Origin: Adineta vaga
Lineage: Eukaryota; Animalia; Rotifera
Length of the DNA stretch: 64,000 nt
Reading direction: 5' to 3'
NCBI GenBank assembly: GCA_021613535.1
Contig: CP075492.1
Coordinates: 5,332,001-5,396,000 of the forward strand
In this document: positions 1 to 58,144 of the stretch, in pieces
Layout: every line of letters begins with the position of its first letter
Position numbering within the stretch: position 1 is the first letter of the stretch
Program-made: the position numbers and the translations under genes
The notes under the pieces: generated by a model
Told to the model about the DNA's origin: nothing
The model's database searches: none
What the model saw: the letters and a program-made list of their open reading frames with translations, nothing else

Positions 1-3000
1 GTGTTAAATCACAGAGAACGGATACAGTTCGAAATTGGAAACTGATCATATTACGGTAATCAGCAGCGATAGAAGCTCTCGACATAATTTGGAACGTTTT
101 TACTAATGCATCATCCCATTCTGGTGTATTAAATATACTAGAACATATTTGATGATATTTTGGTTTCAGTTCAAGAATAAATCGATGATATTTAATTGCA
201 ATATGATTACAAGAACATTGTAAAGTTGAAGAATATTGCTTAAGTAGATCTTGGTATTGAGATACAGTGGGTGATCGAATAATGTATGTGTTTGTCTGTT
301 GTTTTAAGGATGTATATAGAAGAAGAATAAATAAGAAGGTGATTAATAGAATTAAATAGATTCGTGTTTTATATCGATTTTGATAGATAATTCTGATATT
401 TTGTGATGGTGGAATAGCTGGAAAGAGATCTAATTCAATGATACGTTTTCGAATAAAACTGTTCAAAGATCGAAATCGAATTGAAATAGATTGATTTGGT
501 GAGGGATGTCTAAAATAATTCCATAGTCTGATTAGTAGTCCAACAATTAGTGATGTTAAGAAACGTAAAATAATATTTAAACCACCAATTAAACCAAAAA
601 TAGTTGTGAAAATATAAATCATTTGTAATCGACTTTCAATTGAGTACTGACATATCAATGGATGACATTCATGAAAATATGATTGAAATGAACTTTGATT
701 ATACCATGAATGAACAAAAAGATTATTTACTAAAGATGCAATTGTTAAATGTCGCTGATCATCAGAAGAGAATGATTGAAGTATCGTAAAATTGGTTGAT
801 GTTGAATTAATAAACTGTTGAATATAAGAAAGACATGTTTGATTATAAAAACATTCTAATGTCGATATAAGAACTGAGTGAAAAGGAAACCAAGTATGCA
901 TCATTCCTGGAATAATAATTTCAATTGTATTATCATTAATGATTGTTTTCATGTAACATAAACTATCAGACGTAGGATTACAAATACAGCGTGATGGATA
1001 AATAGATACTACCTCACAACCAGGTTTGTCAGTAATCCAGTAATAACTTATTTTTACCCCAAGAAACGAATTACCATAGATATCAACAGTTTTATAAAAC
1101 TCGGTATTTTTCGATGAAATAAATTGATTAATATCAAAATTTGATTTAATCATTTGAGTAATAGATTGATAGGATACAAGTGTAGTTCTTTGATATTGTT
1201 CCAAAAGTAGATTAATTTGTTGTTGAAATGAACTATTACTGAGAGCTTTTTGACTAATCAATTCTTTTCGATAGAAAGAATACAATGAATCAGTGATTGT
1301 TTGATTGGCCATTTGACAAAGAGTAGACAAGAGTTGAAAATAAAATTGAGATTGTGAACGAAAATCATGTGTAAAAAGTACTGTTGAAGGTAATTTCATA
1401 AATTCGATATTAATCCATTCAGAAGATATGAATTTACTTGAACAAATTTCATGAAATTGTGGTTCGAGTAAAGAAATAACTTGAGAATATTTAATTGTAT
1501 TTTGTGAACATGGACAATTCAATGTTAATGGATATTGTTGATAAAGCTGAAGAAATTGTGATAATGTTGGTGAGTTAACAGTAAATGTTGTTAGAGGTGT
1601 TTTAATCATATTGAATAGAATCAGAATAATTAAAGAAATAGATAAGAAAAGAAGATAGATTCGTGTAATTAATCGTTCTTGTTGTAGTTTATGTTCGTCA
1701 GTAGTTGATGGAGTTTTTTCAAAAAGATTCAATGTAATTAGTTTTTTTTTACACCATCGAGAGAAAAGAAGTACTTCTATAGAATAATGGAAAGAAGAAT
1801 TATGCATGAATGAAAAAATTTCTAATTTATACTGTTTCCTTCTTGTAATTGTATATGACGTTGTTGTTTCCGTTGAATTAAACTCCATGTGATTCGAACA
1901 AGTAATGGCGCGAGAATTTTAATTGTTGATGACAATCCACCGAATAAACCAATCAATAATGTGATAATATGTAAAAATGAATGTTTAATACTATTTGTAT
2001 ATTGACATAGATCAGGTGAACAATGATTATAATATCGTTCATATGATGTTGTATTTAACCATTGTGAAACAAAGAGATGATTGAGTACAGTTTCAATAGT
2101 TAAAGTTGAAATCGAGGAATTTAATTTCCGAAAAGTTTTCGATGAATTTGTCAGTATGTCAATAAATGTTTGATTATGAAATGCTTGAAGGGTAGATTGA
2201 AGAAGAGCATTGATCATATAGCAACCGGTTTGAAAGCCCGGAATAGTTGTATTTTGAAATGTTGCTAATCCAAGACAAGTGGTCGAAGTTGAACTTGAAC
2301 AAATACAATTTGATCCATCCAGAAATGTATAATTAATTCCTGTGAAAGGAAGAGAAACTTCCAGACGTGGTTGATAATCATAATTAGGTAAGGCACTAGT
2401 TATTGCAGCACCAGTCATAATTAAACTTTGTGCCGTGATATTTTGTATAAAATTTAATTTCCTTTTAAATGTTTTTGGTAAAACATAAATAAACTCACCA
2501 ATCAAACTATCCATTTGAAGATAAAATGAATTACTAGAAATTAATTTTGATTGAATAAATTCTGTTATATAAAATTGTTTAAGTGCATTTTTGATGATAT
2601 TTTCTACTAAATAACATAATGCTTGTAGAGTTTGAAATTGAAATGCCGCTATACGACGAATATCATGATTTAAAGAATTATTCCAACTTTGATTATAGAG
2701 TATAAAGAGTTGATCAATCCATTCATTAGAGACTAGATCACTGTCACATAAATCATTATTAACGACATTGATAGTAAGAAATTCTTCATATTTAATATCT
2801 ATTTTTGAACAAGAACATTGCAATGTTGGATAGGATATGAATGATGAATATTCTTGAAATGACGGTGATTCGATTATAAATATTTGAGTAAATGATCCAA
2901 TTGAATAATATGAAATAAGCATAAGTAGAGATATTGAAAGAAGAATTAGATAAAATCGAGATGATCGTCGTTCATTTTGTATTATATCAATATTATCACT

Positions 3001-7934: not shown

Positions 7935-9352
7935 ATGCTATTTTATACAACAGTCTTTTTTGTTCTTCTTATTCGTATTACACAACAAACAGGATCATTC
8001 GTTAATGTTAAAAATGGTCGTTTAACTTTGAATGATCAAGATTATTTGTATGTTGGCACAAACTTTTGGTACGGTGCTAATCTAGGTTCAACAGGACCCG
8101 GTGGTAATCGTACACGTCTCTTACGTGAATTAGATCGTTTGCATTCATTAGGAATTGATAATCTACGTGTACAAGCAGGTAGTGAAGGTCCTAACACAGA
8201 ACCATGGCGTATTGTTCCTTCGATGCAACGTGAACCTGGTTTATATGATGATACCATTTTGGATGGTCTCGATTTTCTTTTATATGAAATGGGTCAACGA
8301 AAAATGCGAGCAGTAATGTGTTTGAATAATTTTTGGCATTGGTCAGGAGGTTATGCTCAATATATCGTATGGGCTGGTGGTGCTACTTCTATTCCTTATC
8401 CAGGTGATTATAATGCATTTGAATTATTTTCTGCACGATTTTATCAGTTACCAGTCGCAGTAGAATTGTTTAATAAGCACATTCAATTTATTATGAAACG
8501 TACAAATAAATATAATAATATAGCTTATACTGACGATTCGACTATTGTAAGTTGATAGTTCATGAATTTTCCATTTGTTATCAATTTTATTCGTAAATAA
8601 ATTTCATTTAGATGTCATGGGAATTGGCTAATGAACCTCGTCGTTTAGATTTAGCTTGGGTGAATCGAACAGCATGTTTAATTAAACAATTAGCTCCCAA
8701 ACAACTTGTTACGACAGGTGTTGAAGGAAACATTTCTTCAAAGAATTTCTCGAATGATCATGCTAGTCCATGTATCGATTATGCTACATTTCATTTATGG
8801 GTACAAAATTGGAATATTTATGATCCACACAATGCTTCTATGACATTTCCATCTGCATTAGAATTTGCTCAAAAATATATTGAATTTCACGCTGCCTACA
8901 AAGATAAACCAGTAGTACTTGAAGAATTTGGTATATCTCGGTAAATAGCAGATTTATTTTATTCTTATAGACTCATTCTTTTTCTTCCCATTAGAGACAA
9001 TGATGATCATAATCCAACAGCATCTGTTACTATACGTGATAAATATTATCGATCTATCTTTCAATGGGCTCGTGATCATCGCATACCCGTCAATTTTTGG
9101 GCATATGGTGGTGAAGGACGACCACGAATAGCACGTGCCAATTGGACACAAGGTGATGATTTTATTGGTGATCCACCTCATGAACCTCAAGGTTGGTATT
9201 CCGTCTACGATACAGATCAAAGTACCTTAGAAATTATTCGTCAATTTGCTGCCATCAATTCAGCATCATCTACAAATTTATTACTCTTACCTTTGTGTAA
9301 TCGAATGATGATTTTCTTTTTCATGTCAATACTCACATGTATTTACCTATAG
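7935..9352 (+). CDS. Glycoside hydrolase family 5 (GH5_7-type) beta-mannanase/mannosidase, with signal peptide and C-terminal GPI-like tail
   Basis: Exons 7935-8546, 8612-8940 and 8995-9352; introns of 65 and 54 nt with matching phase. Motifs GTNFWYG, NNFWHWSGG, WELANEPR (acid/base E), VLEEFG (nucleophile E), NFWAYGGEG, GDPPHEPQGWYSVYDTD. Confidence 0.93.
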
Positions 9353-16888: not shown

Positions 16889-18107
16889 CTATGTAGTTCG
16901 AGCGCGCCAACATTGATTTTCTCGTTTTATTTCCTTGATGAAATGTCTTGATTTACTTAAAATCAGCCGTCGCCAATAACTGAATTCAAGCTTTTCTAAC
17001 TGATAAATAGATCGTGTCTTAGCTTTATTTTTAGTTATTTCTTTCAGTCTAGCATATAGAAATTCTTCAGTAATCTCGTTTTCATTATTGATAACAATGA
17101 TCGGTAAATCAATATAGAGTGAATTTAATGTGGAATGCCATACAATGGGAATCACATCGAGATAAAGTGCTTCCCAAGTTCATGACAATCTAGACCATTA
17201 CCACGAGGAGAAAGCCAAAATGGATACTGACGATTACGAGCATAGATAGTTGGAAGACCAGAAATATTTACACCATCAGATTTATCAATACACAAAATAA
17301 ATTTAGTTGTTGTATTATTATTACACAAAGCCTTCCATACATGTGAACGAATTCCAGTGGGATCTGTTAATCGTTGAAAATTAATGAGCAAAAGTTTACT
17401 TTTAGGGCGGTCATCTAAACTATGCGATGTTCTATTATGAGTGAACGTTTGTTGTCGTTGTCGTTGTGCATTTCGAAGTGCATTGGCCATCTCATAACAA
17501 TTGATGCCTACAAGAACTAGGATGTGTTTTATGCTACCATGATTTCTATATTCTTACCAATGGGAATAGGAGTGAATTTGTTATTATCCGACAAATGTAT
17601 CTCGGAATTTTGACCGAACCAATGAATGATTTTTGAGTCATGCTTGTCCAAATAAGACAAATAGCGACTCGGTGATGACGCATCGCTTTGTCCCGTGATT
17701 AACACAAATTTATTTTGTAAGTATGGATAGACTTTGCTAAAGAATGCGTCAAGATAATCAGTTTTAACATAGATAATACTTCCAGCAACTAAACAAGATT
17801 TTATATGGTATCCTCTGGTTGTTGTCATTTCTATTCGTTCGTCAAATTCGTATGTGGGCCAGCCATAAATCCAGTCAGCCAGATTGCGAAAATTTTGCGG
17901 ACAAATAAACTCCGAATGATATGGTACAGTATGTGAACTATCGAATATTAGTTGATTCTCATTTATGATCGATTTATATGGGCATAAATGAGAACAATCA
18001 GGTGATCGATACACAAAAAGATAAAAACTAAGGATAATATGGTATGCACAGATAGTAAGAATCAATTTCATTTTAAGACTGATATGAAATTTCGGACACG
18101 AAATCAT
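16889..18107 (-). pseudogene. Exostosin/GT47-like glycosyltransferase-related type II membrane protein with a 1-nt frameshift
   Basis: N-terminal TM; IIYVKTDYL, FVLITGQSD, WFGQN, PIPIG; 50-nt intron 17557-17508; FWLSPRGNGLDCH[R]TWEALYLDVIPIV broken by a 1-nt deletion at ~17181. Confidence 0.75.
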
Positions 18108-26767: not shown

Positions 26768-27766
26768 TTATGGAATGGGTATTTGAGTTAGTATGTCGCT
26801 AGTATCTCGAAGTACTGTCAATTGTTGACAAGATTTTTTTATTTCCGCTTCAAACCGTTCTGCCACCACATATCTCATTCCGCTCTTGCGTGGCATCACA
26901 TGAAAATTATGACCATAAGAAATGTCAGTGATACGTTCTACTTTGACCTGATTATCAATTTTTAACATAGCTGCATGAGCACATCCATCGCCAATGTATT
27001 CACGAATCATTAAATCATCGCGAACTAACTCATTGACGAAAGTTTGAACTCGTTTTGATTCGTGATACCATTTTAATCGAACTATAAAGAAATTATTGTA
27101 AATGCAGCTAGAGACTTCGGATATATCGTAAAGAAAATGTTTCAGAACAGGCTTCATTGGTGTGATTGGTTCCCAGTATTCAGCACGATAAACATAATCT
27201 AGTTTTTGCTTGTCTGTATATATAAAAAGATCCTTTTTAGTCACATCGGAGAAATACGAATCAGCATCCATTCTCATAAGATAATCATATTGACCACCAG
27301 TGATCGATGGGTGATAAAAGATATCATGTGTCCAAAATCGACACATCAGACGATAGCTAATTGGTTTGTTGGATCGTGATCTATTATTGGGTTGTATTGA
27401 TGTTTGAAGATCGGCAAGAGCAAATGAAATCTTTATTTCTGTATTATTCCTAACTGTACATGATACTATGCGTTGGCGCATGGCAGATGTAAAGCTGTTA
27501 TCATGAAAAATAATGATTGGATAGAATGAGTTATTTTTAATTGAATGAAACCTCACTACAGAATGGATCATATTAATGGTTAAGAAAACAGATCGATCAT
27601 CGCTACGGATAAGTGTCGCGATGACACCTCGCGGTTGATAATAATTATTCTCGGAAATGAAATCATAATCGTTTCTAAAAATACCGAAATATATAGTAGT
27701 AACAATAGTAGTAACTAAGCAGATCAGCATTTTCGGCGTAGAAACGGTTACATTATAACATTTCAT
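26768..27766 (-). CDS. GT15 (KRE2/MNT1-like) alpha-mannosyltransferase-related type II membrane protein, intronless
   Basis: TM anchor; YPIIIFHD; SYRLMCRFW; YDYLMRMDADSYF (DxD); CIYNNF; IGD motif. Confidence 0.8.
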   Translation of the reverse strand: MKCYNVTVSTPKMLICLVTTIVTTIYFGIFRNDYDFISENNYYQPRGVIATLIRSDDRSVFLTINMIHSVVRFHSIKNNSFYPIIIFHDNSFTSAMRQRIVSCTVRNNTEIKISFALADLQTSIQPNNRSRSNKPISYRLMCRFWTHDIFYHPSITGGQYDYLMRMDADSYFSDVTKKDLFIYTDKQKLDYVYRAEYWEPITPMKPVLKHFLYDISEVSSCIYNNFFIVRLKWYHESKRVQTFVNELVRDDLMIREYIGDGCAHAAMLKIDNQVKVERITDISYGHNFHVMPRKSGMRYVVAERFEAEIKKSCQQLTVLRDTSDILTQIPIP

Positions 27767-29148: not shown

Positions 29149-29565
29149 CACTCTAAATAAAAAAGGTGTATTCCCAAACCCATCGAAAAGATTCTGTATA
29201 TTTCAAAAGCTTCAGAATACGTTGACAAATCGCAAGAAATGGTTTTCAAAATCTACGAAACCTTTTTAAGTTCCGTACAGCGAAAAAACGTTTCGTATTT
29301 GCTCACGAAACCTTAATGCTTTCGTATAAAACTACAGTGCTGAACCCCGAGGTTTCGTACTTTCTGACGGAACCTTTTTTTCGCTGCACAAAACTTAAAA
29401 AGGTTTCGTAGAAGATGGTTCGGAGCGTGTATCCACGGTCTGATCCTTTTAGGTTTCGTAAATTTTGAAAACCATCTTTTTCGATTTGTCAACGCATTCT
29501 GAAGCTTTTGAAATCTATGAAATCCTTTGATGGGTTCGGTCACGTTACCTTTTTTATTTAGGATG
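29149..29565. mobile_element. Palindromic CAC-terminus MITE (CMC/EnSpm-like)
   Basis: cactctaaataaaaaagg ... ccttttttatttaggatg; long internal inverted arms; 2-bp TSD CA. Confidence 0.75.
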
Positions 29566-29958
29566 CAGAGCGTTATATCTATAGCATTACAATCTTGAAA
29601 GTATGTGAGGGTGTGGGTGCGAGTATTTATTGTTTACCGCCAGCCATACCCATACCCGGATGCTTATCCTTATATTCACATACTGAAATATACACATTTA
29701 AATATGTGTCGCGAACGAAATCGAAATTTAGTTAAAACTAAAATTTCAGTTGTGACTGTACCAGGACTGTACAGAACTAAAACTGTCTTCCTATAATAAA
29801 AAGCAAGACCAAGAAAAAATAAATAAAAATATAACAAGCGTTCTACATCGGCATGAAAGGAATTTCCGAGATTTTAGAAAAGTCAAGTGATAAAGGATGT
29901 GATTGTTTTGGAGCTAGTATGAGAAAACAAACACAAAGAACACTGGTACTCACACTCA

Positions 29959-30024
29959 TGGGTGGGTGTGGGTGTGGGTATGAAAGAAGAAGAGATAACC
30001 ACACCCACACCCACACCCTCAAGA
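29959..30024. repeat. Best-preserved telomere-like hairpin: (GGGTGT)n - spacer - (ACACCC)n-TCAAGA
   Basis: gggtgggtgtgggtgtgggt atgaaagaagaagagata accacacccacacccacaccctcaaga; about 12 related copies or half-copies in the window. Confidence 0.8.
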
Positions 30025-30702
30025 TTTGAATACTATAGTGAAAACCAAAAAGGTGTTATTCGAAACCTAAAAAGGATTTTGTTGTTAATACAAAGCCTAA
30101 AAGAGATTTCGAGGTTTGCATCGAGTTTGAAACTCTTTATTAACTTTTTATATTAGCTGTGAAACCATTTTAGATTTCGAAGAACGCCTTTTTCGTTTTC
30201 AGTGCATCGACTGGTTTATGAACAAAGGAAAATATGAGAAAACATCTCAGAGTCATTTCTCGTTACATAAAACGGAAATATTTCATTCAGCCTAATTATC
30301 GTGCTTCTTCAGAGTTTGAATTGATTGAAAGAGACGCGATTACTTATGATTATTACAGGTCAATTTCAATCCTGTTGACATACATGTTACACTAAAAAAA
30401 TTCACAGTTTTCACGTTTGAATCGAAACATTCCAGAGGATTATTTATTTAGTGTGGATGTTGATGTGGGTGGGTGGGTAAGCGTGAGCGTAGCATTATTA
30501 TACATCAATCCTATTCATACCCACACGTTCGTCCACATCTCCGCGCACACTCACACTCACACCCTTAGTAAGTAATTTCGATCAGTTTTTGTAGAAAGTT
30601 GACTTAGCGACGATAGAAGCATCCATATTAACGCATGTACGAATTTAAATATCCTTCGACAGTTTTCTTATTTTATTGAGGATTGCTTTGTGGAATTTCA
30701 AC

Positions 30703-33700
30703 ATGAACAAAAAACACTTTGTTCTTATAATGACTGTTATAAGTTTATTAAGTATACTGGTTAATAATACGATTCGTAATTTTGTAATCGAAAGTCAACT
30801 GAACCCTAAAACCATTATTAGTATTTTATCTGGATCTAGTGTATCTAATAAACGTGCATTGCTAAAAATTGCGATTATTGGTTCATCTGGTTACATCGGT
30901 TCACGTTTATTACGCCACTTACAAAGTATAGAAGAATGGAGTGTCGTCGGTTACGATCGAATATTTCCAGGAGAAGCTAGTCATGAGATACCATATAGTG
31001 ATTTGCAAAGCTTTCATGTGGTCATCTACTTAGGAGGCTTAACAGGTCGTGCGGCCTGCCGTGATCGTCCGAAGGATGTCGAACAAGAAAATATCGGAGA
31101 TATATACGCTCTTGCAAAGCGTATGACATCGTTTCAACTTTTAATATTTGCTTCAACATCTGCCATTGCGGAAGGCTCTGGCTCGACTCCTTTTAGCGAA
31201 GACTCTCCTGTGCAGTCACAGTTATTTGACTCTTATACGGCATCGTTAAAGCGCCGTGAAGAAGTTTTACAAAGTTTCAGTTTGAAACGCAAGACTGCTC
31301 CACGAATGATAGGTTTACGATTCGGTACAGTAGTTGGTTTATCATCCAGCCAACGTACTGATTTAGCATATATGGCACTGATTTGTCAAGCATTTCTTGG
31401 CGGAAGGCTGTACGTTACTCATCCTGAGTCAAATCGTGCTTGGTTGTGCATGGAAGACCTTATGGAAGCATTTACCGTATTAATTAAGGGTTCTCAAAGA
31501 GCGAAATGGTTCGATATATTTCATCTTCAATCATTTTCGTGCAGTATATCCAACGTCGTCAATTCGATCGCACGTCTTTCAGGAGCGCACGTCGATATAA
31601 AAAGTCATTCCATTAATGATGATAATGTGGGATTTTCGCTCAATACAACAAAATTCGAGACTACATTTAATTTTACCTTCTCGGGAAACCAAGATCAAAT
31701 CATCACCAGAATGATGGATGATGTACCACGAATGTGCCTCGGTCGAGAGTCACGGAAGGACAACAATTCGGTTCCATGTGTCGTCTGTGGCTCACATGAA
31801 ATGCATACAGTACTAGATTTACATACACAACCTCTCGCTAATGATTTTAAAACACAACCAAACGCATCAATTGCATGTGATCGATTTCCACTTCGTCTAG
31901 TACGCTGTACAAAATGTCATCATACGCAACTATCATATATTGTGGATAGATCCTATTTATTCAGTCATTATCTGTACCAAAGCGGTACTAGTGATAGTTT
32001 GAAAAACTATTTTGAATGGTTAGCTAGAAAAGTTATAGATGAAAGTGATACCAGGAATGGAACTGTAGTTGAGATTGCCTGCAACGACGGCAGTCAATTG
32101 AATCAATTCTTGAAGTACGGTTGGCAAACCATCGGAATCGATCCAGCTAAGAATCTAGTTAAGCTTGCAAAAGCACAGGGTCATACAGTTTATAGTGGCT
32201 TTTGGGGTACTGATAAGTTTTCTCAATTACCTCCACCCGATACCCTGAATGCTATCATTGCGCAGAATGTACTAGCTCATGTTGACACACCTGTAAAATT
32301 TCTACGTGCGTGTGCTGCAGTAATGGGTCTCAAAACAAAACTATACATTCAAACTTCTCAATGTGAAATGTACGAGACAGGACAGTTTGATACGATATAT
32401 CATGAGCATGTATCTTTCTTCACAGCGCATTCATTTAAAAAAATTGCAAACCTTGCTGGCTTAAATATTATCAACTTCGAGATTACACCTATACATGGAC
32501 GTTCATGTTTGGTAACTTTCCAGCGGATGAAATCATCTAATAAATCTTTTCTCACTGCTGCTCAACTGCAATTAGCGCCATCGTTTTCTTCTGCACTGGG
32601 AAAAGAATACAATCTTGGCATGACAGAACATTGGTTTTATCTGAAGTACCAAGCTCAAGCACAATCGATGCGGCAATGGATCATACGTCAGTTAGAAAAC
32701 TTGAACAGTCAAGGACATACCATCGTTGCATATGGTGCTGCAGCCAAGGGCATGGTTCTTTTACATTACTTGTTAGAAATGCCCAATCGATTATGGAATA
32801 TATCTTATATATGCGATGATGCGCCATTGAAACAAAATACATACTGTCCTGGTACACTCATACCGGTGCGTCCCACAACTGAATTGAGTAGATCGGATCC
32901 AACTAAGCCTCTAACAATTATTGTGTTTGCATGGAATTTTTGGAATGAAATAGCCACAAAAATTCGCAAACAGACGATCAAGGAAGGAATTAATAACGTT
33001 TTTGTAATACTTCCGTTTCCTCAACAGCAACTCATTAGATTAAGCTCAGCTACAACTCTAACACTAACAGAAAATCCATATCGATTATTACCTTGGCCAA
33101 ACATACTACCGAGAACGCGTTTGCCTGTGATTTTACTCTCTCATTTCTTCAATGAAGAAATCTTATTACCATATTGGATACGCCATCATGTCTCTATGTT
33201 TGACATGGCGATTTTGATTAACTACAACAGTACTGATCGATCGGTGGAAATTATTCGCCAAGAAGCTCCAAAAACTTGGAAAATTGTAGATTCACGGAAT
33301 GAAGGATTCGAAGCTCAAAAGGTTGACGAGGAAGTAATGAATTATGAACAGATGTATCCGAAAGCATGGAAAATTGTGCTAAATACACCCGAATTTTTGG
33401 TGCATTCAAATCTTCGTCAGATGCTTGCAGAAACAGAGCGCAATACCGATATCAAGGCACTACGTTTTCGTGCTATAGCCATGTCGGGTGATGATTCCAA
33501 ACCATTACAACGATTTGTATCACTATTAAAACAACGTTCTCAATATACTCTGAACACCTCTTCTACAAGCGAAATGCACGGTGAAACATATTATTCACGT
33601 TATTTACATCGTTTTCCGACAGTGCAGTATGGAATTGGTCGTCATAGCATTGCCGATGCCATATGGCAATGGACTGACACTGGGTTCATAGCTAAGTATC

Positions 33701-33933
33701 AATATACACCATGGCCAGAAATAATTAATCGTAAACTTCAGATTCGTCATCGGATTCCATCTAGTGATTTGGCTCAACTACGTGGTTTCCAGCATGATAT
33801 TAACTTCGAGCAACTTCAAATGACAAAAAATCTTGCTCAACGTATGTGTCAGAACGACCTTAAAAACTTAAGTGCAATAACCGGTGAATTAGTGGCTATG
33901 CATCGTTTATGGCGAGAAGTCACCAACTACTGA
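30703..33933 (+). CDS. 1076-aa fusion: signal anchor + NAD-dependent NDP-sugar epimerase/dehydratase (SDR) + zinc-binding NDP-hexose C-methyltransferase + GT2-like domain; intronless
   Basis: GSSGYIG, FASTS, LRFGTVVG (SDR, ~30865-31720); CVVCGS..QPLAN..CTKCHHTQL, EIACNDG, NVLAHV, FDTIYHEH, YGAAAKG, AWNF (C-methyltransferase, ~31777-33020); HFFNEEILLPYWIRHH..NYNSTDRS..WKIVLNTPEFL (GT2-like, ~33120-33930). Confidence 0.9.
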   Translation: MNKKHFVLIMTVISLLSILVNNTIRNFVIESQLNPKTIISILSGSSVSNKRALLKIAIIGSSGYIGSRLLRHLQSIEEWSVVGYDRIFPGEASHEIPYSDLQSFHVVIYLGGLTGRAACRDRPKDVEQENIGDIYALAKRMTSFQLLIFASTSAIAEGSGSTPFSEDSPVQSQLFDSYTASLKRREEVLQSFSLKRKTAPRMIGLRFGTVVGLSSSQRTDLAYMALICQAFLGGRLYVTHPESNRAWLCMEDLMEAFTVLIKGSQRAKWFDIFHLQSFSCSISNVVNSIARLSGAHVDIKSHSINDDNVGFSLNTTKFETTFNFTFSGNQDQIITRMMDDVPRMCLGRESRKDNNSVPCVVCGSHEMHTVLDLHTQPLANDFKTQPNASIACDRFPLRLVRCTKCHHTQLSYIVDRSYLFSHYLYQSGTSDSLKNYFEWLARKVIDESDTRNGTVVEIACNDGSQLNQFLKYGWQTIGIDPAKNLVKLAKAQGHTVYSGFWGTDKFSQLPPPDTLNAIIAQNVLAHVDTPVKFLRACAAVMGLKTKLYIQTSQCEMYETGQFDTIYHEHVSFFTAHSFKKIANLAGLNIINFEITPIHGRSCLVTFQRMKSSNKSFLTAAQLQLAPSFSSALGKEYNLGMTEHWFYLKYQAQAQSMRQWIIRQLENLNSQGHTIVAYGAAAKGMVLLHYLLEMPNRLWNISYICDDAPLKQNTYCPGTLIPVRPTTELSRSDPTKPLTIIVFAWNFWNEIATKIRKQTIKEGINNVFVILPFPQQQLIRLSSATTLTLTENPYRLLPWPNILPRTRLPVILLSHFFNEEILLPYWIRHHVSMFDMAILINYNSTDRSVEIIRQEAPKTWKIVDSRNEGFEAQKVDEEVMNYEQMYPKAWKIVLNTPEFLVHSNLRQMLAETERNTDIKALRFRAIAMSGDDSKPLQRFVSLLKQRSQYTLNTSSTSEMHGETYYSRYLHRFPTVQYGIGRHSIADAIWQWTDTGFIAKYQYTPWPEIINRKLQIRHRIPSSDLAQLRGFQHDINFEQLQMTKNLAQRMCQNDLKNLSAITGELVAMHRLWREVTNY

Positions 33934-34502
33934 GACGTTTCGTTTTATTTAGTAGTCAACTCTGTAAAAAAGGTGGTGCCATAGGAAACTATAAAATGTT
34001 TTAGTGAGGATTCAGAACCTCTCAAGGTTTCATTCGTTTATTAACCCCTTGAATGTTATCGATGCCTATAGGCGTCAGAGAAATTTTTGTGAGAGAAATG
34101 AAAAAAAAATTCTATGTTGTTTGTTCCATAAATAATAAATTATTTCGAAGATCTCATTTCATTTCAAGAATTTTTATGTTCTTAGCAGTGCCTCTGAATT
34201 TATACTTGCCTGGCAGACAGAAAGTGTACCAGGTTCATGACATATATAAAGCGGGAATCAAAAGTTTAAGGCGCTTTTGTTTAGTCCATTTTCTACATCA
34301 AAAGTCTTTTCTTAGCGACATCTATATAACTATTTCGATAGCTTTCACAATGGGACATAAGATTAATATGCTGAGATCTTGGAAGGAATTATTTTTATTT
34401 ATTCAGAAAATTTTTTTTCATGTGATCAAAAGTTTAAGGCTTTTTTAAATGACCCCTTTGTCCTCTGAGGAACAAAAGCTACAGTATGTTTTTGACTATT
34501 AT

Positions 34503-50346: not shown

Positions 50347-51645
50347 ATGAACAGTCGACGTTTTCTTCAATGCAAAAAGTTTTTGCGAAAAATAAACGGA
50401 ATTCAAGCTCTACTATTTTTTATCTTATTAGTCGTAACAATAAGCTTCGTCGTTTTTCGGTGGTCAGCGTTTCACAACTTTCGAACTTATTTTTTCTCCA
50501 GATCAAATAAAAACACCGATTTCGAATCGAAAGAAAAGCATGAATTAAACAACAGACTATGCGACTGGTATTTTCTAAACTACACGCCAAGCTCTTGGGA
50601 GAATACATGGTTTAACAATATAAAACAATATCAAAATAATATTTGTGATATACTTTCAAGTTCCGAAAATTTGAATAAATCACGAAGATTAGTTAGCAAG
50701 TTAATACAATTGCAAATGTTCGGTAGAAAATTACAGGATGATAAAGATCAAGATACCAATGATCTCCTCTCAAAAATGTTTTATCGGCAAGAATGTATTA
50801 GTTCACAGACCGGAGAATCGTTCATAGTAGCAGACGTATCGCATTTGATTGAACCACTTGTTGGATTACTTCGAGACCCTTTAAGCGTCTGTTCTCAGCC
50901 TGATTCTTCGTTGTTATCACTTTCATTGTATAAAGGAGCAATAATACAATCAAAACGATTTCTCCTTTTATCTGTTTCAGCTCCAATTTACGTTCATTTT
51001 CTAATGGAGGATCATGAAAGTACTTTACAAAATAGTATTAGCTCAGGAAAAGGCGAGGCCAACATTCTGCCTTGGATGTATAAGCGATCAAAATCTAGCT
51101 TATTTGATACAAGTATAGACATGGCTAGTGCGAAAAGTATATTGATTGATTTGGGGAGTTCTTATTTTGGCGCTTGGAATAATGACACAAGCGCTGCTGC
51201 AGGGCGTTGGTTTTACGAATATTACAAGCGATTTGGAGTCAAATTTGATCGTGTTATCGCATTTGAGCAATCAACGTTAGATCCGAAAGTTGCATGGCAG
51301 CAATTACCGGATGATGTTTTCCCAATCTATACTCTTATTAATGTCGGCTGTTCTGCAACTGGACAGTTCAATCCTTGGAGAACTTTAAAAGCGATCGCAC
51401 GTCCACACGATAATGTAGTTATTAAACTAGATATAGACACTCCTGAAATCGAAACCGCTCTAATAAATCAGATTCTCAACAACCCAAGTATCCATAGCTT
51501 GATAGATGAACTTTTTTTTGAGCATCACGTCACCATAAAAGAGATGATGCCTCATTGGGGGAACCCGTTAGGTACATTGGAAAATTCTTATGTTTTATTC
51601 ACTAAGTTAAGACAACTTGGAATACGGATGCACTCATGGCCGTAG
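50347..51645 (+). CDS. FkbM-like SAM-dependent methyltransferase-domain type II membrane protein, intronless
   Basis: TM anchor at aa ~20-38; LIDLGSS, VIAFE, VVIKLDIDTPEIE, IDELFFEHH, LRQLGIRMHSWP. Confidence 0.75.
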   Translation: MNSRRFLQCKKFLRKINGIQALLFFILLVVTISFVVFRWSAFHNFRTYFFSRSNKNTDFESKEKHELNNRLCDWYFLNYTPSSWENTWFNNIKQYQNNICDILSSSENLNKSRRLVSKLIQLQMFGRKLQDDKDQDTNDLLSKMFYRQECISSQTGESFIVADVSHLIEPLVGLLRDPLSVCSQPDSSLLSLSLYKGAIIQSKRFLLLSVSAPIYVHFLMEDHESTLQNSISSGKGEANILPWMYKRSKSSLFDTSIDMASAKSILIDLGSSYFGAWNNDTSAAAGRWFYEYYKRFGVKFDRVIAFEQSTLDPKVAWQQLPDDVFPIYTLINVGCSATGQFNPWRTLKAIARPHDNVVIKLDIDTPEIETALINQILNNPSIHSLIDELFFEHHVTIKEMMPHWGNPLGTLENSYVLFTKLRQLGIRMHSWP

Positions 51646-56500: not shown

Positions 56501-58144
56501 TGTTACATAAAATCTATGAAATTTTTAAGTAAATGATTAATCTGTTGTTTGCATTCCAACCACTCAACTAATTCATACAGTGTCTCAAGCCTCCGTTAGT
56601 TCTTCTGGTCGGTCCGTATTCTTGATATATATATATATATATTGCTACACAATAAGAGAAAAGTGACAAGATGATGTATATACATAGAAGACATCTTTCG
56701 CAGATAGAATATGAGAATGAAGCAAGGGGAAAAAAGCGAAAAATCGGTACTGCAGTATACCCTTTGTACTCCCGCGATAAATTATGAGTATTCTTGAGAG
56801 GTTTTTCAGTATTTTCAAGTCCACCGGTGATTAGTGTTACAGTGCACCCGCTAGAGTACAATGCAAATAAACCAAGCGAATAGAAATGTTCAAATACTCC
56901 ATGATACTTCGAAACTGGAGTATTTTGGAGCATTTGAGGCTTTCTGCTCGCTAGTGTTAGTTACATTGTATTCCAGCGGGTGCACTGTAACACTGGTCAC
57001 TGGTGAACTTGAAAACACTAAGAAAAATTTCAAGGATACTGATAACTTACCGAGGGAGTACAAAGAGTATACTGGAGTACCGACTTTTCGCTTTTTCCAC
57101 CTTGGAATGAAGACAGGAGCAAAGAACGAAAATATAAAGCAAATAAATATAAAATAACAAACGAAGGCTAATAAGCTCTGTATTTTTTATTCCAGCCTAT
57201 TCTTTTGTGAACGTCATTAAGTTTTGGACATTAACACACCAGAAATGAACTTTGCATTTAATAAATCCACGCTATAATTAGAAGAAAACAGAATTGCCCG
57301 CTCGAAAATTCTCTTCCTATTAATTTTCTGAAGTTTTTTTTCAATGCGATTATACCGTAACGATTTATCATGGTTCGATTGCCTGCGGCTACAACTAAGT
57401 GACACATTTATATGTTAAGTAATTACGCTTATGATACTCATCTGCAAGGTATTTACAGCACAATTTTCATGTCATTTTTTTACTTGATGTGTAGGGTTTC
57501 ATCTTCCGGACAATCTCTGTCCAATTATCATGAAGCATGTTGAGGCATGGCATTATGTGGCTGAGAACCAAATTAAACTGGCATTAATCCTGGAGGATGA
57601 TCCACTCTTTGTACCATTTTTCAGGAAAAAGTTGGAGAGAGTTATTTACACAGCCATTCGAACAGGTGCTCTGCGCATTGATACAAATTGTTTAAATCTT
57701 AGTGAAAGTCGGACCATGAGAAACGACGAGTGGATTTACCAAGAACCAATGATAGTTATTGGAACATGCTTCGATTTTTACGATGAATCATTTAATAGTT
57801 CAGTTCCAGATCCGCAGCCATTACTTACGACACACAAGCTGCGTCCATCGCGTTGTGCCCATGCATATATGATTACAGCATGTAGCGCACGGGCTATGCT
57901 AAGAGAAATCGCTGCGAAACCAACAGAAATCGATACACCTGACTTTCTAATGAACGAATTGTTTCCTCGATCACATGTCCTTCAATCATTTTGGGCTGAT
58001 CCACCGCTTGTATACCAAGGCAATCGAGTCGATGATCTTGAGCAGTTACAAACTTTCAAAGAAACTAAATACCAACTGAAGGCAGAAAATAAAAGAAACT
58101 TAAAAAGCTTTTCCTCTTGGTTTTTTTCTAAAAGCCAATTATAA
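53569..58144 (+). CDS. GT25 family glycosyltransferase, type II membrane; 3 exons
   Basis: Exons 53569-53623, 53685-54209 and 57495-58144, with phase-1 junctions checked. TM ILVVNGLFLFGLLWW; QVYVIS..DRHE; KHVEAW; LILEDD; RCAHAYMIT..A; PPLVYQ. Confidence 0.82.
55822..56018. mobile_element. Palindromic CACTCT-type MITE in the GT25 intron
   Basis: tactct..aaatgctct / agagcattt..agagtg inverted arms. Confidence 0.55.
56092..56465. mobile_element. CCCAGG-terminus GGATCC-rich MITE in the GT25 intron
   Basis: at|cccaggtcga...tcgacctggg|at; 2-bp TSD AT. Confidence 0.88.
56723..57104. mobile_element. hAT-type palindromic MITE in the GT25 intron
   Basis: CAAGG...CCTTG termini; ~180-bp arms; perfect 8-bp TSD gaatgaag. 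Confidence 0.88.

Follow-up and report, generated by a model that had tools for sequence, protein, structure and literature searches.

How does an animal come to carry, in a single polypeptide, what looks like an entire bacterial pathway for a C-methyl-branched sugar, and what could such a protein do? The question is raised by a gene of the bdelloid rotifer Adineta vaga, which lies on the forward strand at 30703-33933 of a 64,000-nucleotide stretch of contig CP075492.1 (the window). The sequence-only reading had described its product as a membrane-anchored fusion of a nucleoside diphosphate (NDP)-sugar short-chain dehydrogenase/reductase (SDR), a zinc-binding C-methyltransferase and a glycosyltransferase (GT)-like domain, and Pfam matches together with fold comparisons bear out all three identities. 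The fusion is real, conserved and uncharacterised, and would work like a compact bacterial 3-C-methyl sugar pathway. On balance, at slightly better than an even chance, we take it to be a type II membrane enzyme of the Golgi or endoplasmic reticulum that would make a 3-C-methyl-branched sugar and transfer it onto a glycan or glycoconjugate. The wider proposal, which we place a little below even, is a widespread and so far undescribed eukaryotic Golgi pathway in one polypeptide, in which closed-redox C-methylation from S-adenosylmethionine (SAM), a Tyr-x6-Arg SDR and a GT of a new family that works without metal would put a 3-C-methyl sugar on the surface glycans of an animal and of algae from several supergroups.

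Domains, active sites and integrity of the fusion

In the central domain, three Pfam families score above their curated cut-offs (Methyltransf_13, E 3.5e-15; Methyltransf_23, 3.3e-14; Methyltransf_14, 1.8e-26), and the best solved sequence matches are MtmC, KijD1 and TcaB9 (PDB 4rv9, 5t64 and 3ndi; E 4e-44 to 4e-35), whose fold it matches at a TMt of 0.86-0.90. It shares with them the three-part fold, the Cys4 zinc site, the SAM motif and the Tyr/His/Tyr-x-Glu-His site at about 25% identity. However, those enzymes are soluble, stand-alone actinomycete proteins acting on dTDP-deoxysugars, whereas the rotifer protein is fused, anchored and eukaryotic. All motifs quoted in the sequence-only reading are present (CVVC 359-362, CTKC 402-405, EIACNDG 457-463, NVLAH 522-526, YHEH 566-569 and YGAAAKG 677-683), and its claim of an intact site holds for the four zinc cysteines, the SAM motif and the active-site residues alike. 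The TcaB9 residues that structure titles list as mutated (Y76, H181, Y222, E224 and H225) align to Y423, H526, Y566, E568 and H569, and these five, like the four cysteines, are nearly invariant across the family alignment. By such sequence criteria the domain belongs to the TcaB9/KijD1/MtmC family, with catalysis itself predicted. Enzymes of this type methylate C3 of an NDP-4-keto sugar via an enolate, so that a 4-keto substrate is required.

The N-terminal domain is matched by the Pfam family Epimerase over residues 56-263 (E 1e-9) and retains the SDR glycines G60, G63 and G66, the acidic D85 after beta-2, S151-T152 and Y178; D85 presumably favours NAD over NADP. Leu182 occupies the place of the YxxxK lysine. 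Among the 124 fusions that bear an N-terminal extension, position 182 is Met or Leu in 118 and R185 is present in every one, with Tyr178, the Ser/Thr residue and the NAD motif kept alongside. Residues 182 and 185 stand at i+4 and i+7 from Tyr178 on helix 177-195 of the structure model. Across 382 alignment rows, K182 without R185 occurs in 124 and R185 without K182 in 254, while 4 break the pattern or otherwise have neither; the two residues are mutually exclusive in 379. This distribution suggests that Arg185 compensates for the lost lysine.

Compared with solved structures, a profile built from both fused and stand-alone SDRs finds Cj1427 of Campylobacter jejuni (PDB 6vo6) at E 2.5e-37 and the next match, thirteen orders worse, at 2.6e-24. 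Cj1427 is the best solved SDR match over the whole length and shares the motif R-x-[AG]-T-V-x-G-x-S-P-x-x-R-x-D-L; it is a GDP-heptose C4-dehydrogenase with non-exchanging NAD(H) and a ping-pong mechanism (PMC10680097). By analogy, the SDR of the fusion would hold NAD(H) tightly and oxidise C4. Oxidation of this kind would supply the ketone that the methyltransferase needs, and the retained NADH could then reduce the methylated product. The two enzymes differ in that Cj1427 keeps YxxxK, uses alpha-ketoglutarate and works with a separate epimerase and reductase, whereas the rotifer SDR has its lysine replaced and a C-methyltransferase as partner.

The C-terminal domain, when modelled alone, reaches a predicted local distance difference test (pLDDT) score of 94.7 and adopts a GT-A fold, as judged by its similarity to SunS of GT2 (Z 13.6, root-mean-square deviation 4.6, 206 residues aligned), GalS1 of GT92 (Z 13.5, 3.6, 213) and WrtF (Z 12.0). 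Glyco_tranf_2_4 matches residues 817-905 (E 4e-5) and scores 27.3 bits on the isolated domain against a gathering score of 27.5; the same family matches 89 of 95 relatives at E<=0.01. The Pfam check proposed by the sequence-only reading thus returned Epimerase and the three methyltransferase families above cut-off and Glyco_tranf_2_4 just below it. At the position of the DxD motif, all family members carry N/T-x-T/P-E, and conserved basic residues follow further towards the C terminus (R966, H969, R980, H981, R1010 and K1011); E897, R966, H981 and R1010 are conserved from phages through rotifers. BoGT6a likewise has an Asn where DxD would begin, and conserved basic residues towards its C terminus; there, NXN and such basic residues can stand in for DXD and metal (PMC3961637). 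By this analogy the domain is probably metal-independent, and its sequence places it in a putative DxD-less subfamily in which no characterised member was found. As the SDR and the GT each depart from one defining motif, they are best called Cj1427-like and GT-A-fold, respectively.

The reading frame runs from ATG to TGA through 1076 codons without interruption or intron, as first described, and contigs of two putative RNA runs (X1, 30437-34150; X8, 30416-34146) span the gene with no joint inside it. Their flanks are almost uncovered, unlike those in a run of genomic appearance, which covers them too. The contigs are consistent with an unspliced 3.7-kb transcript; that both runs are RNA is our guess. 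Compared with the orthologues of Adineta steineri and Rotaria socialis, each of the three domains has a ratio of nonsynonymous to synonymous substitutions (dN/dS) of 0.08-0.13, with dS near saturation, which indicates purifying selection on all three. A pseudogene was rejected on the transcript-like contigs and a dN/dS of about 0.1, and a contaminant on the chromosome-scale contig and a third-position GC content of about 0.3 shared with bdelloid orthologues. The gene is single-copy in the 100.8-Mb, six-contig assembly, in which no paralogue or homeologue was found. The full-length three-domain model has a predicted template modelling (pTM) score of 0.85, suggesting that the domains stand in a defined mutual arrangement.

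Compartment and proposed reaction sequence

Two lysines precede the 15-residue hydrophobic segment F6-V20, and a heuristic assessment of hydropathy and charge finds the basic tail, single hydrophobic helix and variable stem typical of type II Golgi enzymes. A clear N-terminal hydrophobic helix is present in 78 of 173 three-domain proteins, the remainder being truncated, mis-started or truly anchor-less, and in 61 of the 78 the charge difference C-N is negative (N side more positive), an N-in/C-out bias that supports the membrane anchor claimed earlier and suggests that it is type II-like; F6-V20 might instead be a cleavable signal. In the public gene models of the A. steineri and R. socialis orthologues the annotated start lies downstream of the true ATG, which leaves out the anchor (L138:7920-8000 and L140:3320-3378). 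Its apparent absence there is an annotation error, as an upstream in-frame ATG and helix were found. Relative to shuffled sequences, N-glycosylation sequons are enriched 1.63x in the bdelloid proteins, against a ratio of 0.85x in prokaryotic proteins that stand alone. From the charge bias and the sequons, we infer that the catalytic part is luminal. The A. vaga genome holds full-length genes of MFS_5, to which proposed SAM transporters of the Golgi belong (10.1101/2021.07.06.451061). On two eukaryotic contigs (L007 and L145) the fusion has Golgi-type GTs as neighbours within glycosylation gene clusters (nucleotide-sugar transporter, GT25 and GT90; GT17, GT92 and PC-esterase). There is precedent for luminal SDRs that keep NAD bound: animal UXS1 and plant GAE and MUR4 are extended SDRs with a type II anchor, as predicted for the fusion, and work in the Golgi lumen. 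They differ in being single-domain proteins without C-methylation or transfer, and in the SDR profile search they are not close by sequence.

Based on these features, we propose the following hypothetical reaction sequence, in which (i) the SDR, with tightly held NAD+, would oxidise C4 of an NDP-sugar; (ii) the zinc- and SAM-dependent methyltransferase would deprotonate C3 of the resulting 4-keto sugar and then methylate it; (iii) the same SDR would give C4 back the hydride of the NADH it has kept; (iv) the DxD-less, probably metal-independent GT-A domain would transfer the branched sugar. Since the hydride would be returned by the same SDR, the cycle would be redox-neutral and its luminal needs would come down to NDP-sugar and SAM. 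Of the luminal supplies previously thought necessary, SAM and NDP-sugar stay in the model, whereas free NAD may be dispensable if the SDR retains its cofactor as Cj1427 does. We guess that the product is a 3-C-methyl-hexose such as 3-C-methyl-mannose. To our knowledge, methylation of eukaryotic glycans is O-methylation, and C-methyl branched sugars derived from SAM belong to bacterial antibiotics and lipopolysaccharides (LPS). The likely product class is represented by 3-C-methyl-D-mannose in Helicobacter pylori LPS (PMC12961483) and by virenose, a 3-C-methyl sugar, in Coxiella LPS (PMC3204966). Within the literature searched, to which most subscription papers did not belong, we found nothing relevant on eukaryotic or viral occurrences of the fusion or of its Pfam families, and descriptions of 3-C-methyl sugars from bacteria only.

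Several observations weigh against this proposal. The SDR lacks the canonical lysine, for which Arg185 is a putative substitute, and the K/R switch counts as a single evolutionary event; the GT domain is only 9-14% identical to any solved GT and has N894-T-P-E897 in place of DxD. The sequence-only reading had missed both departures. The main oddity of the compartment is the Cys4 zinc site, unusual in an oxidising lumen; anchored members outside the bdelloids show no sequon enrichment (1.06x), and MFS_5 is not specific evidence because humans have it too. Cj1427 itself recycles its NADH with alpha-ketoglutarate and hands its product to a separate reductase, and the giant-virus fusion loci L009 and L011 adjoin a dehydratase-like SDR.

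The last of these points would suit a deoxysugar route, in which a separate 4,6-dehydratase provides an NDP-4-keto-6-deoxy-hexose for C3 methylation and the SDR acts solely as 4-ketoreductase, giving a 6-deoxy-3-C-methyl sugar of the evalose, virenose or mycarose type. All solved relatives of the methyltransferase come from deoxysugar pathways, and we know of no GDP-fucose-making eukaryote without a 4-keto-6-deoxy intermediate. We nevertheless regard this route as unlikely, given that the SDR is nearest to a dehydrogenase and not to reductases, that a regex heuristic applied to flanks of up to ~6 kb detected no second extended SDR in 47 of 51 three-domain loci, which are related to one another, and that the route would require luminal import of a keto intermediate as well as net reducing power. 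Less likely again is an open ping-pong cycle, the documented behaviour of Cj1427, in which a 2-oxo acid would re-oxidise the NADH and the methylated 4-keto sugar would be reduced by another enzyme or transferred unreduced; the cassette brings no partner reductase, and the lumen would need a supply of oxo acid.

The zinc site bears on topology as well, as it fits a reducing compartment. If the short helix of 15 residues left the catalytic part on the cytosolic side, with free access to SAM, NAD and NDP-sugars, the enzyme would glycosylate a lipid or a cytosolic acceptor, and its viral and bacterial relatives do operate in the cytosol. The charge bias of the 61 members, the sequon excess in bdelloids and the resemblance of several family members to cleavable signal peptides make this orientation improbable. 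We give still less credence to the idea that one atypical domain, the SDR without its lysine or the GT without DxD, is a non-catalytic binding or scaffold part. A canonical motif is altered in both domains, some paralogues (P0031, P0053, P0066 and P0087) have a degenerate GT tail, and many relatives consist of SDR and methyltransferase only; the SDR nevertheless retains its remaining catalytic and NAD-binding residues together with R185 in all 124 extended fusions, and the GT its four residues conserved from phages to rotifers, at a dN/dS of about 0.1.

If the model of a luminal, redox-neutral 3-C-methyl sugar pathway is true, rotifers, several groups of algae and giant viruses should contain a monosaccharide not yet reported from them, with a mass signature of +14 Da that resists O-demethylation. 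The model would also provide a one-protein test case for making 3-C-methyl sugars without dehydratase or reductase, define a new DxD-less GT subfamily and a Lys-to-Arg variant of the SDR, and document the route of a glycosylation module through phage or bacteria, giant virus, protist and animal.

Distribution and origin of the cassette

The full-length homologue search returned 426 matches, of which the best 120 were listed. Among these, the orthologues of Adineta and Rotaria are 54-74% identical, and bdelloids are the only animals in the minority of matches that bear an organism name. Anchored fusions at 42-45% identity occur in the chlorarachniophytes Lotharella and Amorphochlora and the cryptophyte Hemiselmis, and partial relatives in Tetradesmus (green alga), Symbiodinium (dinoflagellate) and Emiliania (haptophyte). 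Full anchored fusions in protists rule out an invention or retargeting specific to rotifers, and the suggestion that an animal had redirected the enzyme to its secretory pathway does not survive, the anchored form being widespread in microbial eukaryotes. A fusion already widespread and characterised had been named as what would refute the sequence-only reading: the architecture search found it widespread, and found no characterisation. As a curiosity of rotifers the gene is less surprising, given the many glycosylation genes of foreign origin in bdelloids and the presence of the anchored form in protists too.

Giant-virus contigs (GVMAG) hold triple fusions without anchor, and the Klosneuvirus KNV1 protein A0A1V0SJ68 (743 residues) matches SDR and methyltransferase at 39% identity (E 3e-81). 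These viral proteins resemble the rotifer protein as SDR-methyltransferase or full triple fusions, but lack the anchor and are annotated automatically only. T4-like phages and bacteria (Roseomonas, Massilia, Pseudoduganella, Polynucleobacter and Methylobacter) encode the three domains in neighbouring but separate genes, which mostly follow the order SDR, methyltransferase, GT. Many T4-like phages of freshwater and marine origin (L030-L061) have the cassette, and in some the GT is present twice; named phages had stand-alone methyltransferases only. A permuted GT-SDR-methyltransferase fusion on phage-like contigs (L026:5974-8877), which keeps the SDR lysine, arose independently. Repeated clustering and fusion indicate that the three domains form one functional module, and the earlier idea of a self-contained unit that oxidises, methylates and transfers gains support from this cassette and from the confident three-domain model.

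In domain trees built from a subset of rows and rooted on prokaryotic sequences, fused and stand-alone forms separate (support 100 for SDR, 99 for GT and 100/99 for methyltransferase). Bdelloid sequences are monophyletic and form a clade with the anchored eukaryotic forms in the methyltransferase (100/100) and SDR (96) trees; the GT tree is less resolved. A clade of bdelloids with prokaryotes or phages is rejected by the approximately unbiased test (p-AU 1e-7), which rules out direct bacterial or phage transfer and removes the support for a gene taken straight from bacteria; bdelloids within versus sister to the protist group gives a p-AU of 0.084, compatible with either placement. Since bdelloids group with anchored protist forms, the anchor is older than, or not confined to, rotifers. 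Two viral SDR-methyltransferase genes nest in the eukaryotic clade, one of them, L013:5887-8199 from a giant virus, with a signal-like N-terminus, so that exchange ran both ways. We propose that a three-gene cassette of prokaryotes or phages would have undergone a single fusion, in a lineage represented today in giant viruses and microbial eukaryotes, that the anchor would have been added after fusion, and that uptake by early bdelloids would have followed. Early bdelloids most likely acquired the gene horizontally, and the donor was most likely a eukaryote or virus carrying the anchored form.

Feature coordinates and neighbouring open reading frames

Table 1. Window coordinates of the fusion gene and the features of its product.
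Feature	Coordinates	Strand	Basis
Putative transcript, ~3.7 kb, unspliced over the coding sequence	30416..34150	+ (inferred from the reading frame)	X1 and X8 contigs, flanks nearly empty
Coding sequence, 1076 residues, single copy in genome	30703..33933	+	
F6-V20, hydrophobic signal anchor (predicted type II) preceded by short basic tail	30718..30762	+	Hydropathy 2.9, charge difference C-N -3.5
Variable low-confidence stem, residues 21-53	30763..30861	+	pLDDT <50 over 19-50; unalignable among homologues
Extended SDR, Cj1427-like, residues 54-345	30862..31737	+	GxxGxxG 60-66, D85, N130, S151-T152
Putative catalytic helix, Y178-x3-L182-x2-R185-E186; YxxxK Lys replaced, Arg at i+7	31234..31260	+	Alignment; helix 177-195 in model
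Predicted zinc-binding NDP-sugar C3-methyltransferase, residues 355-790	31765..33072	+	MtmC E 4e-44, KijD1, TcaB9; Foldseek TMt 0.86-0.90
Methyltransferase sites: Cys359/362/402/405, Y423, SAM motif 457-463, H526, Y566-H-E568-H569, YGAAAK 677-682			
GT-A-fold glycosyltransferase-like domain, residues 806-1076	33118..33930	+	pLDDT 94.7 model; structure matches; conservation

Two short open reading frames, 30457-30480 and 30635-30679 (+), precede the gene within the transcript-like contig, in a region that may be an outron cut away by trans-splicing. Just upstream of the gene, 29186-29528 and 29605-30021 are short elements with inverted arms that the run of genomic appearance covers at very high depth, resembling miniature inverted-repeat transposable elements. 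The chromosome measures 20 Mb, genes for a proteasome subunit and G-protein-coupled receptors lie nearby, and no conserved synteny with the window neighbours was seen in the bdelloid loci compared.

Elsewhere in the window, an intronless, signal-anchored frame of 332 residues at 26768-27766 (-) is weakly similar to the GT15 mannosyltransferase KTR4 (E 0.009) and divergent from the fusion; it has a 95% identical copy ~90 kb away and several further paralogues elsewhere. Three more frames are of glycan type: an anchored protein of 432 residues at 50347-51645 (+), which shows methyltransferase-like motifs with no clear Pfam match, a GT25 fragment at 57530-58144 (+) and an anchored frame at 17529-18107 (-). 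Neither the last of these nor 7935-8555 (+) has a Pfam match; by eye, the motifs of the latter resemble an exon of a secreted GH5 mannanase.

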